63,275 bases of DNA, filler included, from Octopus bimaculoides (GCF_001194135.2; 6 parts of 4 records of this genome joined end to end with filler, not necessarily neighbours in it), one strand, 5' to 3'; numbered from the whole stretch's first letter, positions 592 to 13,271 are shown. Notes: a model not told the origin generated them from the sequence alone. Numbers and translations are program-made.

Positions 592-683
592 ACGCCTTGA
601 TGAATTTAAAGAATGTGCTGAACAAGAAAAGGACGATTCATGCCTAAAATTCTTCAACGAAATCGCTAAGATTAACTGCCTAC
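592..683 (+). CDS. Exon B0 of an uncharacterised Cys-rich tandem-repeat protein (RLDEFKECAEQEKDDSCLKFFNEIAKINCL)
   Basis: catccag|A CGC CTT ... TGC CTA C|gtgaga. 92 nt, phase 2 to phase 1, 3 Cys spaced x8 and x11, homologous to the exons at 6613, 9249 and 12443. Confidence 0.85.
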
Positions 684-879
684 GTGAGAAACTTTTTAAT
701 TAATTATATCTTATTTGAAAAGATATTGCATTGATGAAGTATATTCTGAATAGAAATTATTTTATTAAATATTTGTTGGTGTACATATCCCAGATGCATC
801 AATTTTTCCTTCAAACGAAGTTAAAATTTGAGAAAACAAATATGGTAAATAATGATTTACTTTCGACACTCAAACTCCT

Positions 880-2560
880 GTTGGCTGTAGAGGCTATGTT
901 CCAGGGCCCGTCTACGCTTATGATTTTCTTGTCTATTCCTTGATGTTATATTTCTATCTTTTTCTGTATTCGCCCCTTCTTTGAATTCCTTTCACATTCG
1001 ATTGAAGACTGTGCTTTGAAAGTCTACTGAACTATTTTATATGACCAAACCATCTCAGCTCTTTTTACTGTTTCAGATGAAGCATTTGGAAGCTTTATGT
1101 GATTGTTTTCCGGGCCTCATGTTCTTTGAAAGAATCCAAGCACAATTACCCAAGATGTTACCCTAGCATCAAGTTCCCAGTGCCTGTATCTTTTCTTAGA
1201 AACGGAGCCCGAATGAATTTAATTATGTTCTTCACAAAAACATTTCTTTTTTTCCTTTTGATTTTAGTGTGACTATTTTTGTCATAGTCTTTGCAGGTGT
1301 TCAAAGATTTGTGGTGTTTACTGTTTATCAATAATACTTGCTTCTAAGTATTTGAACAGTTACACTATCTCAAATTCGTATTCTTTAGATAACATTAGAG
1401 ATATATGATGATGTTGCAAATATTTTCATGAGAATTGCTTTTTCGACACCGATTTACATTGTGAAGTTTGGAGAAGTGGGTATTAAGGGGACAATCGACT
1501 AATTCATCTAACATCTACCAGCTACTCTTTTAATGTCATCAATAAATCCCACATTCATAAAGTTCCTCGCATTGTGGTAGTCTGTACCTATTTGATATAC
1601 TGCAGTATAAACTATGACCTGCTCTAGGAAGACGTCAAGAATGTGGAGGGCAAAAGCTATAACCTTATTGGTCATCCACATAGTAACGAACTTCTCGACT
1701 GATAACACCTTTGAATAAAACTGTCGATTTGAATGAGTCAAATTCTTGACCATACTATATTTCTCAATTCTAGCCGACAACGCGTCATATCAAGTACCAA
1801 CAGTTTCCTTCATGAGGACCATGACCACGTGTCAAGGCATGTGGTGTTTAAAGAATGTGACTGCTATTACTTCCAAATCTACGGAAAACTGCTTGTTGCT
1901 CGTCATTAGGATTAATGGCCGAAAACCTCAATTGATATGGAACGATTGTGAGCGTTATCGTACTTCCATACATGGCCTTATAGATGGTATGAACATTTTG
2001 GTACAGTTGGAGAAAGGCTTTCTAGGAAAACAATATGATTAGTGGTTGAGTGACGTAATCTTAAATCTGACATAGCGCAACATATTTCATCGTACGACTG
2101 TTTATTGTTATCGTCTTTTATACAATCAATCTATGTTTTTGTGGCTCCATGCCTTTCACTTTTTTCTTCGTCATTTGATAATCAACCTAATTAGTAGAGT
2201 AATCTATAGTACGCATATTTCAATCTCTTTTGTCTTGAAATTGTGCAGCCGCTGAAATTACATCGTCTTCATTTCCAATATTTCCTTTTGTTCAATATAA
2301 TTTTCCAATTTGTGTCCCAAATGATTACGTTTCCTCTATTCATATGAACATTCACAGCAGAAACATTACATGTGTGTTATTTCTGTTTTGTTGTCATGGT
2401 TGGTGCTGTCGTTAAATCTCTTGCGAAGGATTGCAAGTATGTCCCAAACATATTTGAACTGACCTAAATATTTGTTCATTCCACACCAGTTTCGCATGCC
2501 TTCTCTCTATACCAATATCATTGGATTACCCTGGGAGACGGAGTTAGCTGGTGGTAGCCG
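880..2560 (-). mobile_element. Heavily decayed RTE-type LINE reverse transcriptase fragment
   Basis: The minus strand gives broken RT motifs: LDVFLEQVI...IG...GFIDDIKRVAG (YADD region) and LFKYLEASII. It has many stops and frameshifts, and the boundaries are approximate. Confidence 0.6.
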
Positions 2561-2721
2561 ACAAGTATTTTAGGAGCTTTCAAGATCCTTTAACGTGGAT
2601 TTTTCCCATACTAAACTAAACGGTTATGTGTGTATGTGTGAGTGTGTGTGTGTGTGTGTGTGTGTGTGTGTGTGTGTGTGTGTGTGTGTGTGTGTGTGTG
2701 TGTGTGTGTGTGTATGAATGA

Positions 2722-3547
2722 GTTATACTCCTTTGGTATTTTATCCTGCACTTGTCTCTCCTGTGTTTACGTATTTTCCACCTGTTAGTGATGGCCTGCA
2801 CTTAATGGGCATCTTTATTTATTTATAATTGAACACCACACAGCCTTGTCCACAATAAGTTCTTACATTTAAACATGATTTCTGCTACTCTACACAGTTT
2901 TGTTTCTTTCTCTCTATCTCTCTATAGTCCTCTAGATTTTCGTACTTTCCCCCCTCCTTCCTTGTTGTCCTCTGTCTTTCTCCCACGCCCTACTATCTTT
3001 CGTTCCTTCTCCTCACTCCCTTTTGTTTCTTTCCCTCGCCGCCTCTCTTGTTCTCCTTCCCCTCTGGCTGTTGCTCACACATGACTACAGGTCATTTCTC
3101 CCGCGCCTGCCTTTTCTGGTCTCGACGTCCACCGGGCTGGACGTCATTTCTCTCGCCTTCCGACATTTTTTCTCTTCTACTATTTTCTTATCTTCTACTT
3201 ATTCTATTTCCTTCAAAATTTTCTCCCAGGTATTACCCATTACAATTCGTTTTGGCCTAACGTCCCTTAATGTTTCTCTTCGTCGATTGTTTACTTTGTA
3301 CGTCCACTCTGTTGTTGTTTGTTCGTTCGAAGCTCTGATTCACCACAAATTTTATATTTTTAAAATTTCTGGATGCTGCTGTCTTACGAGGTTTTCCTAT
3401 TTTGTTGTTAAAAGCACGAAATAGGTCAGTAAAACATTCGACAGCTGATGAGCGAGTTACTTTCTCTTATTATTTTATCCTGTACCTGTCTCTCGTGTGT
3501 TCGTGTGTTTACGTATTTTTCACTTGATGGTGATGTCCTATACTTAA
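2722..3547. mobile_element. Penelope-like relic with ~85-bp direct terminal repeats
   Basis: 2722-2805 resembles 3463-3547 (ttttatcctg(c/t)ac...gtgtttacgtatttt(c/t)cac...g(c/t)acttaa). The interior is pyrimidine-rich. Family assignment is inferred. Confidence 0.35.
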
Positions 3548-10865: not shown

Positions 10866-11713
10866 GTACAGTGTGCGATGGGTAAATTGTCGCAATTTTA
10901 TATTGTTAATTTTGCGCATGCACATTATTTGTTTTTGATTTTGTCGTCTACAGTGTGTAGCAGGGTTAGTTGTGAGAAAAACAGCACCATGAGGCAATTC
11001 ACTGTGCTAGGAATTTGAAAACGACATGCTATACTGCTTGGCATTCGAACCGGAAGCTCCACTACGAATATTTACCAATATGAACATGTACCGAGAGTGA
11101 TACAAATCGAACATCTAGGTAACATCATGGTGTTTGGAGTAATCACTAGTGATGGCGACGTTATGCCTCGACTCATCTTCCCACACAGCCTCAAACTCAA
11201 CGTGGAGGCCTACATCAAGTGCCTGGTGAAGATAACGCTGCCCTGGGTCAAGCGGGTGACTGCTGGAAGGCCCTATGTCTGGCAACAGGAGTCTGCATCA
11301 TGCCAAACAAGCAGAACCCAGTTATGGCTGTTAGACAATTTCTCTGACCACACCACCCCTAAAACTTGACCACCTAACCCTCTAGACTGCAACCCCTTTG
11401 ATTATTATGTGTGGAGCGCAGTTGAACGAGAGACCAACAAAACTCCTTGTAATACCAATGATAAACTGAAGGCAAGGATTACGGCAGCATTCACCAAATT
11501 AAACAAGTGGCTCGCCCAGAAGAGTTGCAGGAGATTCCGAAGTCGTCTGGAAGCGGTAGTAGAAGCCAATGACGATTTTACTGAATACATTTACTCTCTT
11601 TTATTTCAAGATATGTTTATGTTATTTTGGTAAGTATATCTGTTAGAATGAGATGTCAGTGTTATTTTCATTTTTGCGTAATTTAGACGACTATTTATTC
11701 ACCGCACTTTGTA
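10866..11713 (+). mobile_element. Internally deleted Tc1/mariner (maT/DD37D-like) transposon inside the A3-B3 intron
   Basis: Transposase remnant MVFGVITSDG...YVWQQESA...PPNPLDCNPFDYYVWSAVE...RFRSRLEAVVEAND. Degenerate TIRs tacagtgtgcgatgggtaaattgtcg / cgactatttattcaccgcactttgta. Confidence 0.8.
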
Positions 11714-12442
11714 TATAAGTAATACTAAGTATGGCACAAGTTCACAAATATGCACTCAAGACGGATCGAGAGACCGAAACATGTCAGTCTTTAAGAATAT
11801 GTCATGCTTTAGGAAACCTATAGTAATGTTTGATCATCACAAGACACATGCTATTTAGAATTCGTTGTTTATTATTAAACCTTTATTATCTTTTCTTCAA
11901 ATGACTGCGTAAAACTTCATTTTGCTACAATCTACCATACGAAATGCACCAATATTTAATCTTTATTGCCAAATGTTAGAAATCAGTTTGTAAAATTTAT
12001 ATCTTCATTTGCGTTTTACTACCCTGGAAATATAAAAATTACATACAATGGTAACGTGATATCAGTATGTAACGAAGATAAAATTTTAGTTTCAAACGTT
12101 TAGCACAAGGCAAATAATTTCTGGGGAAGGAGGGAGGGAGCCAGTGACAGGAAGCCAGTGCTCAGCCGGTACCTATCTAATCGACCCCGAAAAGCTGAAG
12201 AACAAAGACCACTGAGGCGTAAATTGAACTCAGAATGTAATGAGCAAGTCCAAATAGCACTACGTTATTTGACCGGTGTGCTAGCGATTCCGTCAGTTTG
12301 CCACCTTGCAGTACACATAAATATTGCAAGATATTTGAAGCTGATACAGAGTTTATTACGTTAATAATCGAAAATATTCTCCATTATATTATAACTTACC
12401 TTTTTCTGAAATGAATTTCTCAGATTTATCTTGATTTTGCAG

Positions 12443-12531
12443 ACGCCTTGAGAAATACAAAAGTTGTGCTAAAGATACCAATGAGAAGTGCTGGGATTTC
12501 TACAACGGAATCTTTGTTGATAATTGTCCAA
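12443..12531 (+). CDS. Exon B3 of the same gene (RLEKYKSCAKDTNEKCWDFYNGIFVDNCP)
   Basis: tttgcag|A CGC CTT ... TGT CCA A|gtaaga. 89 nt, phase 2 to phase 1. Confidence 0.87.
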
Positions 12532-13180
12532 GTAAGACATACTTTATTCACGCATATTGGCAGAAACGGTGCATTTGCAAACTAAATTCGAAACATATTA
12601 CATTTTATAAGTTACGTTATTAACATAAAGCCTGAAACGGATAAAGTTGATCACATTGACTCCAGTGCTCAGCTGATACTTTACTTTACTGACTCCGAAA
12701 GGAGGAGGAAAAGTGAAGTTGACCACAGCGGAATTTGAATTTAGAACGTAAAGACGGATGGAATGCTACTAACGATTTCTCCAGCTTACCAGTACGGACA
12801 TAATAATAATTATTTCAGGCATTTGTTCGACTAATTGAAATAGCTCCCATGAAAACACATAGTTCCCCATGTACGCAAGCTTATGTAAATAATTCATCCA
12901 TTTTAGCCACAAACTGTATATTACAGATCTCAACAGATAACTTAGAACGAGTATTTTCTTTAAAAATCTAACCGAAAAATATCCATGAAGAATTATGAAC
13001 AAGCTCACAAAATTTATTTCAGAAAACATCTTCGTCAAGATTAAACCATGTAATATAGCCTATAACCACTAATGGTGGGTGAGACCAAAATTAATCGATT
13101 TAATTTCTGTTGAGTCATTTAATAATTCAAAAGGATTGATTAGAAAATCAATGGATATGTCAAATTTGTATGTATTGCAG

Positions 13181-13271
13181 ATAATGACACATGTATAAAC
13201 GAGTTCCAAAACATGTGTCCCAATGCGGAACGGAATTATCCTAAGCGTATTCCAGACACGCATTTTTGCAA
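13181..13271 (+). CDS. Exon A4 of the same gene (NDTCINEFQNMCPNAERNYPKRIPDTHFC)
   Basis: attgcag|AT AAT ... TTT TGC AA|gtacgt. 91 nt, phase 1 to phase 2, NDT sequon. Confidence 0.87.

Follow-up and report, generated by a model that had tools for sequence, protein, structure and literature searches.

A run of alternating exons in Octopus bimaculoides belongs to an Octopus-restricted gene built of predicted three-helix, six-cysteine modules

A stretch of genomic DNA from Octopus bimaculoides (GCF_001194135.2), 63,275 nucleotides (nt) long with its filler and called the window in the following, carries eight plus-strand exons between positions 592 and 13271, counted in the window. An initial annotation had proposed that they form a hidden multi-exon gene for tandem six-cysteine modules. 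All eight peptides that it listed were located on the plus strand by an exact-match scan, where it had placed them, and each exon is flanked by AG on its 5' side and by GT on its 3' side. In order, the exons measure 92/91/89/100/92/91/89/91 nt, and their phases alternate, with B exons entered in phase 2 and left in phase 1 and A exons entered in phase 1 and left in phase 2. Once spliced, they give 735 nt open in a single frame, coding for 244 amino acids with 24 cysteines; the codons split at the seven junctions read Q, D, V, K, V, K and N. Exons, splice sites, phases, frame, cysteines and junction residues are thus all reproduced. The orthologous locus of Octopus sinensis (L001, in CM016864.1) holds gene LOC118763774, whose protein P0001 is the sole close match in a word-indexed protein search. 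The exons of the window and their orthologs are the following.

Exon B1, 592-683, plus strand: 92 nt, phase 2 to 1, encoding predicted helices 2-3 (RLDEFKEC...INCL), with its A half upstream of the window; ortholog at L001 4980-5071, at a divergence of 18.5%, the codon changes being 13 nonsynonymous and 1 synonymous.
Exon A1, 5803-5893, plus strand: 91 nt, phase 1 to 2, encoding predicted helix 1 and a conserved YP-x3-PD loop (VDNCTNS...DYC); ortholog at L001 5777-5867, 92% identical.
Exon B2, 6613-6701, plus strand: 89 nt, encoding predicted helices 2-3 and finishing module A1B2; ortholog at L001 6586-6674.
Exon A2, 8128-8227, plus strand: 100 nt, the long A type; ortholog at L001 8440-8539.
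Exon B3, 9249-9340, plus strand: 92 nt, finishing module A2B3; the fastest-evolving exon.
Exon A3, 10295-10385, plus strand: 91 nt; ortholog at L001 10020-10110.
Exon B4, 12443-12531, plus strand: 89 nt, finishing module A3B4, the one modelled by AlphaFold.
Exon A4, 13181-13271, plus strand: 91 nt, opening half of the next module, its B partner not being found in the window.

Hidden Markov models (HMMs) of the A and B peptides, run against the six-frame translation, have matches confined to these 4+4 places. With the B model, the four B exons score at E 1e-17 to 1e-20 and the next B match at E 0.25; the four A positions were set independently by the exact-match scan and by tblastn with P0001. 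Because the A and B models match these places and no others, the eight-exon pattern is not due to chance. Among the matches listed, the same six-frame search gave no further module exon on either strand, in the large first intron or downstream.

The locus is collinear with L001 at 86-91% nucleotide identity. Between 1152 and 28664 of L001 lie 19 module exons (B0 to B9), each bounded by AG/GT, which join in a 586-amino-acid open frame, and exons B1 to A4 of the window pair one-to-one with L001 exons B1 to A4. Over the 735 coding nucleotides the two species are separated by 94 substitutions and zero indels, while the aligned intron blocks carry 16-93 gap columns each. All 16 splice dinucleotides and all 24 cysteines are kept in O. 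sinensis, amino acid identity is 77%, and the ratio of nonsynonymous to synonymous rates (dN/dS) is 0.69, with a dS of 0.19 that rests on ~136 sites. The eight exons could, in principle, be a decaying array or pseudogene that drifts neutrally and whose open frame is a leftover. Such decay would agree with an exon divergence equal to or above that of the introns, with an O. bimaculoides gene model that is devoid of exon B4 and has a cysteine changed to tyrosine at the end of A3, and with an exon B5 that is not found in the window. It is contradicted by the frame free of indels beside gapped introns, by the intact splice dinucleotides and by a simulation of neutrality, in which the same number and kind of substitutions were placed at random in 200,000 runs. 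All cysteines were kept in 1.1e-4 of the runs and the frame stayed free of stops in 0.027, the two together in 5e-6; the neutral expectation of amino acid identity is 0.733 +/- 0.016, below the 0.77 observed. A pseudogene is thus very improbable and, because joint retention of cysteines and frame has P = 5e-6, a neutral one is excluded. The gene is real and under constraint.

The multi-exon gene of the initial annotation therefore holds up, its splice sites, frame and 24 cysteines being conserved across species at P = 5e-6. Its junctions are also those used in database gene models of three Octopus species. Of the N-x-T sequons that it had noted in A1, A3 and A4, the one in A1 is kept in O. sinensis and the other two are not.

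Between B1 and A1, the first intron departs strongly in length from its O. sinensis counterpart, and it contains an assembly gap.

Intron 1, 684-5802, plus strand: enlarged by a lineage-specific, microsatellite-rich insertion at ~1049-5447, with no module exon inside.
Assembly gap and duplicated flanks, 3571-3893, no strand: 3571-3710 equals 3754-3893, 140 nt each at 100% identity.

The run of N at 3711-3720 lies 3.0 kb past exon B1 and precedes exon A1 by 2.1 kb, and its flanks sit in a TA/AC microsatellite. Identical copies of this kind usually mark an unresolved repeat; here they most likely arose when the microsatellite was assembled and are not a true duplication. The O. sinensis locus is collinear on both sides (window 319-1048 with L001 4707-5437, and 5448-7177 with L001 5424-7147). 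There the 4.4-kb segment ~1049-5447 is absent, and the B1-A1 intron measures 705 nt. Moreover, the O. bimaculoides protein P0002 joins exons B1 and A1 directly. Since the gap is intronic, lies in a segment missing in O. sinensis and is spanned by a protein that joins both exons, it has no bearing on the reading frame, and the scaffold join is corroborated.

At the other end, A4 is left without its partner. Exon B5 lies 1.3 kb beyond A4 in O. sinensis, and neither tblastn nor the synteny comparison found it between 13271 and 17975. It has been displaced by an insertion, is hidden in a gap of 584 N or has been lost. Synteny with O. sinensis stops at 14039, and the next 3.9 kb (14040-17975) include this gap (16899-17482).

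Repeats are abundant throughout the locus. TG, TA and AC microsatellites abound in the 4.4-kb insertion, where a ~100-nt element also occurs twice (2714-2812 and 3448-3554), the copies being 75-81% identical; they are probably repeats akin to short interspersed nuclear elements or associated with microsatellites. A (TG)n tract of ~93 copies occupies 8450-8636 in intron 4, and further TG/TA/AC microsatellites lie at 2627-2713, 9690-9739, 16126-16219 and 17887-17975. The microsatellites of the window produce many spurious open reading frames (ORFs) rich in cysteine, histidine or threonine. In the A3-B4 intron, a 90-amino-acid ORF on the plus strand (11097-11369) looks by eye like the C-terminal part of a Tc1/mariner transposase; a mariner-like remnant was discarded, as the ORF has no Pfam match even at E <= 10. 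This region is common to O. sinensis, so that any insertion there is old.

The gene belongs to a family of narrow distribution. A module profile run exhaustively with HMMER against 1.84 billion representative proteins (E <= 1e-3) returned 22 relatives, all from O. bimaculoides, O. vulgaris or O. sinensis, which bears out the proposal of a lineage-specific family. Twenty of them bear the name 'uncharacterized' or 'hypothetical'; the other two are P0016, a 'Secreted protein', and P0006 (A0A0L8GPX5), a 'GDNF/GAS1 domain-containing protein' in UniRef. In the word-indexed search the module alignment gave no match, not even to the known member P0001, which reflects a limit of that tool. Protein P0002 (XP_052824892.1, O. 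bimaculoides LOC128248155) has 540 amino acids and consists of a signal peptide, an A half and then ~nine modules; it is the full-length counterpart of the gene in the window. Its signal peptide, placed directly before an A half-module, speaks for the secretion that had been postulated; the signal-peptide exon is thus upstream of the window, where the initial annotation had put it. A look-up of the O. bimaculoides locus of P0002 yielded nothing on record. The neighbour of LOC128248155 on the same chromosome record, LOC106874482, encodes seven further modules, and the 586-amino-acid frame of O. sinensis matches the stretch divided between these two O. bimaculoides genes. A second cluster of paralogs (P0004-P0022) is found on another chromosome record, at 55.6 Mb in O. 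bimaculoides and 84 Mb in O. vulgaris. Its proteins comprise one to four modules; a signal peptide is present in most of them, and many end in a hydrophobic C-terminal tail of the type that signals attachment of glycosylphosphatidylinositol (GPI). Gene LOC128249887 has six isoforms with differing module content.

In sister species the gene is not hidden, having already been modelled under names such as 'uncharacterized' or 'hypothetical predicted protein'. Some of these models depart from the exon series described here, and one departure involves an ATG within an intron.

Intronic ATG (MSKSVAV), 10276-10294, plus strand: just 5' of exon A3 and overlapping its acceptor; the start in the O. sinensis and O. 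vulgaris models.

Both P0001 (O. sinensis) and P0003 (O. vulgaris) begin with MSKSVAVED, which tblastn places at 10276-10386. Because they start at this intronic ATG, the two models are without signal peptide and upstream modules, and they look truncated. In addition, P0003 joins A3 straight to the much later exon B8. The O. bimaculoides model has a defect of its own. In residues ~327-356 of P0002, the counterpart of module A3B4, the last cysteine of the A half is a tyrosine (NPDLNYY) and the B half (B4) is missing, which indicates either true decay of the module or an exon missed by the gene model. Searches of the literature by gene, accession and family names found nothing on these genes or their family. 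The novelty lies in recognising the domain, along with its confidently predicted fold, narrow distribution, mark of selection and possible descent from RGM.

In P0002 and its paralogs the mature protein opens with an A half, which in P0002 and the single-module paralogs directly follows the signal peptide. Because this holds in all these proteins, the structural module is an A exon followed by a B exon, with 60-64 residues, and the B-then-A order first given for the array is reversed. Exon A encodes helix 1 and the YP-x3-PD loop, and exon B encodes helices 2 and 3. These elements come from AlphaFold models of module A3B4, obtained first from an 8-row alignment (predicted local distance difference test, pLDDT, 74) and then from 41 diverse module rows (pLDDT 93.9, predicted template modelling score 0.76). 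The latter is a three-helix bundle with helices at 2-19 (kinked at Cys13), 29-40 and 45-58, the YP-x3-PD segment forming loop 20-28. Conserved family-wide are C5, C13, A16, Y20, P21, P25, D26, C30, R32, L33, C39, C47, F/Y51 and C59; the remaining positions are highly variable. Five of the six cysteines are invariant and one is kept at 98%. Each module is thus predicted to be a compact three-helix bundle with three disulfides. As regards the helical, disulfide-stapled domain anticipated in the initial annotation, the helices are borne out by the model and the disulfides are implied by the six conserved cysteines.

The array could also be a polyprotein, a precursor cut into disulfide-rich peptides of ~60 residues that would act as toxins of the saliva or as waterborne pheromones. 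A signal peptide and a small cysteine-rich unit in many tandem copies are what such a precursor would have, and toxins and pheromones often evolve fast, as this gene does. The joins between modules read MCV/VHEE, HCE/VED and NCP/NND (the slash marking the join), with no spacer peptides and no dibasic or other recognisable processing sites. The sole recurrent basic pair, K/R-R at module positions 31-32, falls within the domain, where helix 2 begins, and single-module paralogs have tails resembling membrane anchors. Because processing sites between modules are wanting, a polyprotein is improbable.

The array itself retains traces of its growth. Its A exons alternate between 100 and 91 nt and its B exons between 92 and 89 nt, and the flanks of the introns are similar at a period of two: the sequence upstream of B1 resembles that upstream of B3 (69% over 189 nt), the one upstream of A1 resembles that upstream of A3 (79% over 95 nt), and the same is seen upstream of B2 and B4. 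Because both patterns share this period, the duplication unit comprised four exons, or two modules, introns included. The length of every B+A exon pair in the window is divisible by three (183 or 189 nt), and gain or loss of a unit therefore preserves the frame.

Under this frozen scaffold, the sequence changes rapidly. Exon divergence from O. sinensis is 12.8%, against 9.5% (629/6638) in the introns, the latter figure being biased low since it derives from well-aligned blocks only (Fisher P = 0.006). The excess lies in two exons, B1 with 18.5% (P = 0.0055) and B3 with 21.7% (P = 3.4e-4 against the introns), the other six together being at 10.3%. Nonsynonymous to synonymous codon changes number 13:1 in B1 and 10:2 in B3 (together 23:3), and 56:17 overall. 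Identity to the O. bimaculoides counterpart P0002 is just 49%. Gene conversion was considered as a source of the high exon divergence and rejected, since each exon is closest to its positional ortholog (78-92% versus <= 69% for any other).

The search for known relatives leads to a single family. For the window protein there is no Pfam match to EGF, Kazal, Kunitz, ShK, WAP or LDLa at E <= 10, and none for the modules and family proteins at E <= 1, which agrees with the exclusion of these families made earlier. No Pfam family at all rises above its threshold for the window protein. The domain at the N-terminus of RGM proteins (RGM_N, PF06535) is the sole Pfam family that recurs, in 7/12 modules and 9/23 proteins. 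Conversely, a profile of 48 modules searched against all PDB sequences matches RGM N-domain chains only, at E = 0.043-0.4 (4uhz_B at E = 0.043). A single-sequence search of the PDB gave GLIPR1, REP1 and PAC1 only, at E > 0.4, and these were set aside as noise. Aligned by hhalign with an RGMA/RGMB alignment, a thin profile made of two near-identical RGMB fragments to which RGMA was added from the PDB matches, the module obtains a local score of 20.2 (P = 5e-4); 200 column-shuffled controls have a mean of 8.5, a standard deviation of 1.9 and a maximum of 16.8. Ten shuffles that preserve the cysteine positions gave no RGM_N match. The shared segment is D-x2-(Y/F)-C-x-x-L-x-x-Y-x-x-C-x7-C, and a global alignment pairs 5/6 cysteines. 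The family first called unrecognised is thus restricted to Octopus and uncharacterised, yet it is not entirely lacking in relatives, since it resembles the RGM N-terminal domain, weakly and reciprocally. The window protein, like the O. sinensis array and P0002, contains nothing besides modules; by composition these proteins are not RGMs and would share with them one domain type at most. The module is plausibly a divergent offshoot of the RGM head domain, or else a convergent look-alike, with the chances about equal.

The convergent option can be extended to a domain born within Octopus, without ancestry shared with RGM, that has a structural or matrix role, for example in mucus, egg coat or cuticle. 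It is favoured by relatives seen in Octopus only, by a similarity to RGM_N limited to ~30 residues around helix 2, by the outcome of Foldseek, which found no significant structural neighbour, and by the frequency of tandem cysteine-rich repeats in extracellular matrix proteins. Four observations oppose it: the RGM matches, weak as they are, are reciprocal and exclusive (Pfam RGM_N and PDB RGM chains), the shuffle controls abolish the signal, nonsynonymous change above the intron rate is rare in structural proteins, and single-domain paralogs with GPI-like tails resemble cell-surface molecules. An Octopus-born matrix protein is therefore rather unlikely.

The reading retained here, held with moderate confidence, is that the window covers the middle of an Octopus-restricted gene whose product would be an extracellular, multivalent binding array of RGM-like modules under diversifying selection. 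The RGM head, a bundle of three helices and three disulfides, grips the fingers of BMP/GDF ligands, and the module would be its remote relative or a close structural analogue. Carrying many such modules, the protein may act outside the cell as a multivalent array, and the single-module paralogs with GPI-like tails would be the membrane-tethered, cell-surface form. Binding surfaces would diversify under selection while the scaffold stays frozen. Because these surfaces read as under diversifying selection, the partner is probably fast-changing or species-specific, such as a pathogen, a gamete or a conspecific cue. By analogy with RGM, a conserved ligand of the TGF-beta family (BMP/GDF) is a less likely partner; it is the one concrete lead that this analogy offers.

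Several points weigh against this reading. Transcription is inferred from gene models made by other groups, and the selective argument depends on the low-biased intron figure and on the few sites behind dS. The RGM_N scores of the window protein (17.8 bits) and of the best module, A1B2 (22.7 bits, E = 1.2e-4), fall below the Pfam gathering cut-off of 24.2 bits, and the 37.9 bits of paralog P0004 are the sum of partial matches of its four repeats. The probability given by hhalign is only ~31-33%, over 29-32 columns. With both AlphaFold models, Foldseek against the PDB gave no match at E <= 0.001 and no RGM chain at E <= 10, a negative that is weak evidence, as Foldseek is insensitive for very small helical bundles. 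At the thresholds applied, RGM_C matches no family member, and no search was made for the GDPH autocleavage site. Finally, the C1-C2, C2-C3 and C5-C6 spacings of the octopus module are unlike those of RGM: C1-C2 spacing is 7 in the octopus module and 4 in RGM, and the C2-C3 loop is 16 versus 22.

It is tempting to go one step further, on more doubtful ground, and to propose that octopuses have evolved an extracellular recognition repertoire from one domain, whether born in the lineage or derived from the RGM head, with secreted arrays on one side and a cluster of GPI-tethered single-domain proteins on the other. If so, helices 2-3 would be under positive selection that remodels the binding surfaces from one sister species to the next, a pattern that would fit recognition in immunity, between gametes or by chemotactile sense, or decoys for cystine-knot growth factors. 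Cephalopod genomes contain lineage-specific families whose roles are mostly blank, and the present one is a clean example, combining a confidently predicted fold, duplication by four-exon units and frozen cysteines with surfaces that outpace introns. Should the RGM link hold, a growth-factor-binding module would have become detached from its parent protein and expanded into a new repertoire, which gives a testable hypothesis on its binding partners.

Three known systems invite comparison. GDNF/GAS1 is an extracellular module, wholly helical and rich in disulfides, that occurs in GPI-anchored proteins (GFR-alpha, GAS1) binding cystine-knot ligands. Its domain has ~ten cysteines and five helices, whereas the octopus module has six cysteines and three predicted helices; no Pfam match to GDNF/GAS1 (PF02351) was found at E <= 1 in 23 family proteins, nor at E <= 0.1 in P0006, the protein that bears this name. 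Other lineage-restricted, tandemly duplicated families built on cysteine scaffolds likewise have frozen cysteines, hypervariable surfaces, phase-compatible exons and secreted or GPI-anchored products. Here the analogy concerns the mode of evolution only, as fold and sequence are unrelated and no Pfam match to any of these families was found.

The RGM N-terminal domain (RGMA, RGMB and hemojuvelin; 4UHZ, 4UHY, 4UI1, 6Z3H) comes closest. It has six cysteines and three helices, as does the octopus module, whose helices are predicted, and the central C-x8-C-x7-C spacing is the same in both. In RGMB this domain is a three-helix bundle with three disulfides, in which Leu103 inserts into a pocket of GDF5/BMP2 (PMC7354924); the aromatic residue at position 51 of the octopus module, four positions after Cys5, aligns with this leucine. 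RGMs are extracellular, as the octopus family is predicted to be, and they are GPI-anchored (PMC11488336); many single-module paralogs in octopus have GPI-like tails. Helix 3 of the octopus module is ~10-13 residues shorter than that of RGM, and the YP-x3-PD loop is peculiar to the octopus family. The octopus modules are tandem or stand-alone, unlike the RGM assembly of N domain, RGM C-terminal domain, GDPH site and GPI anchor. RGMs, moreover, are conserved, whereas the octopus family occurs in Octopus only and evolves fast.

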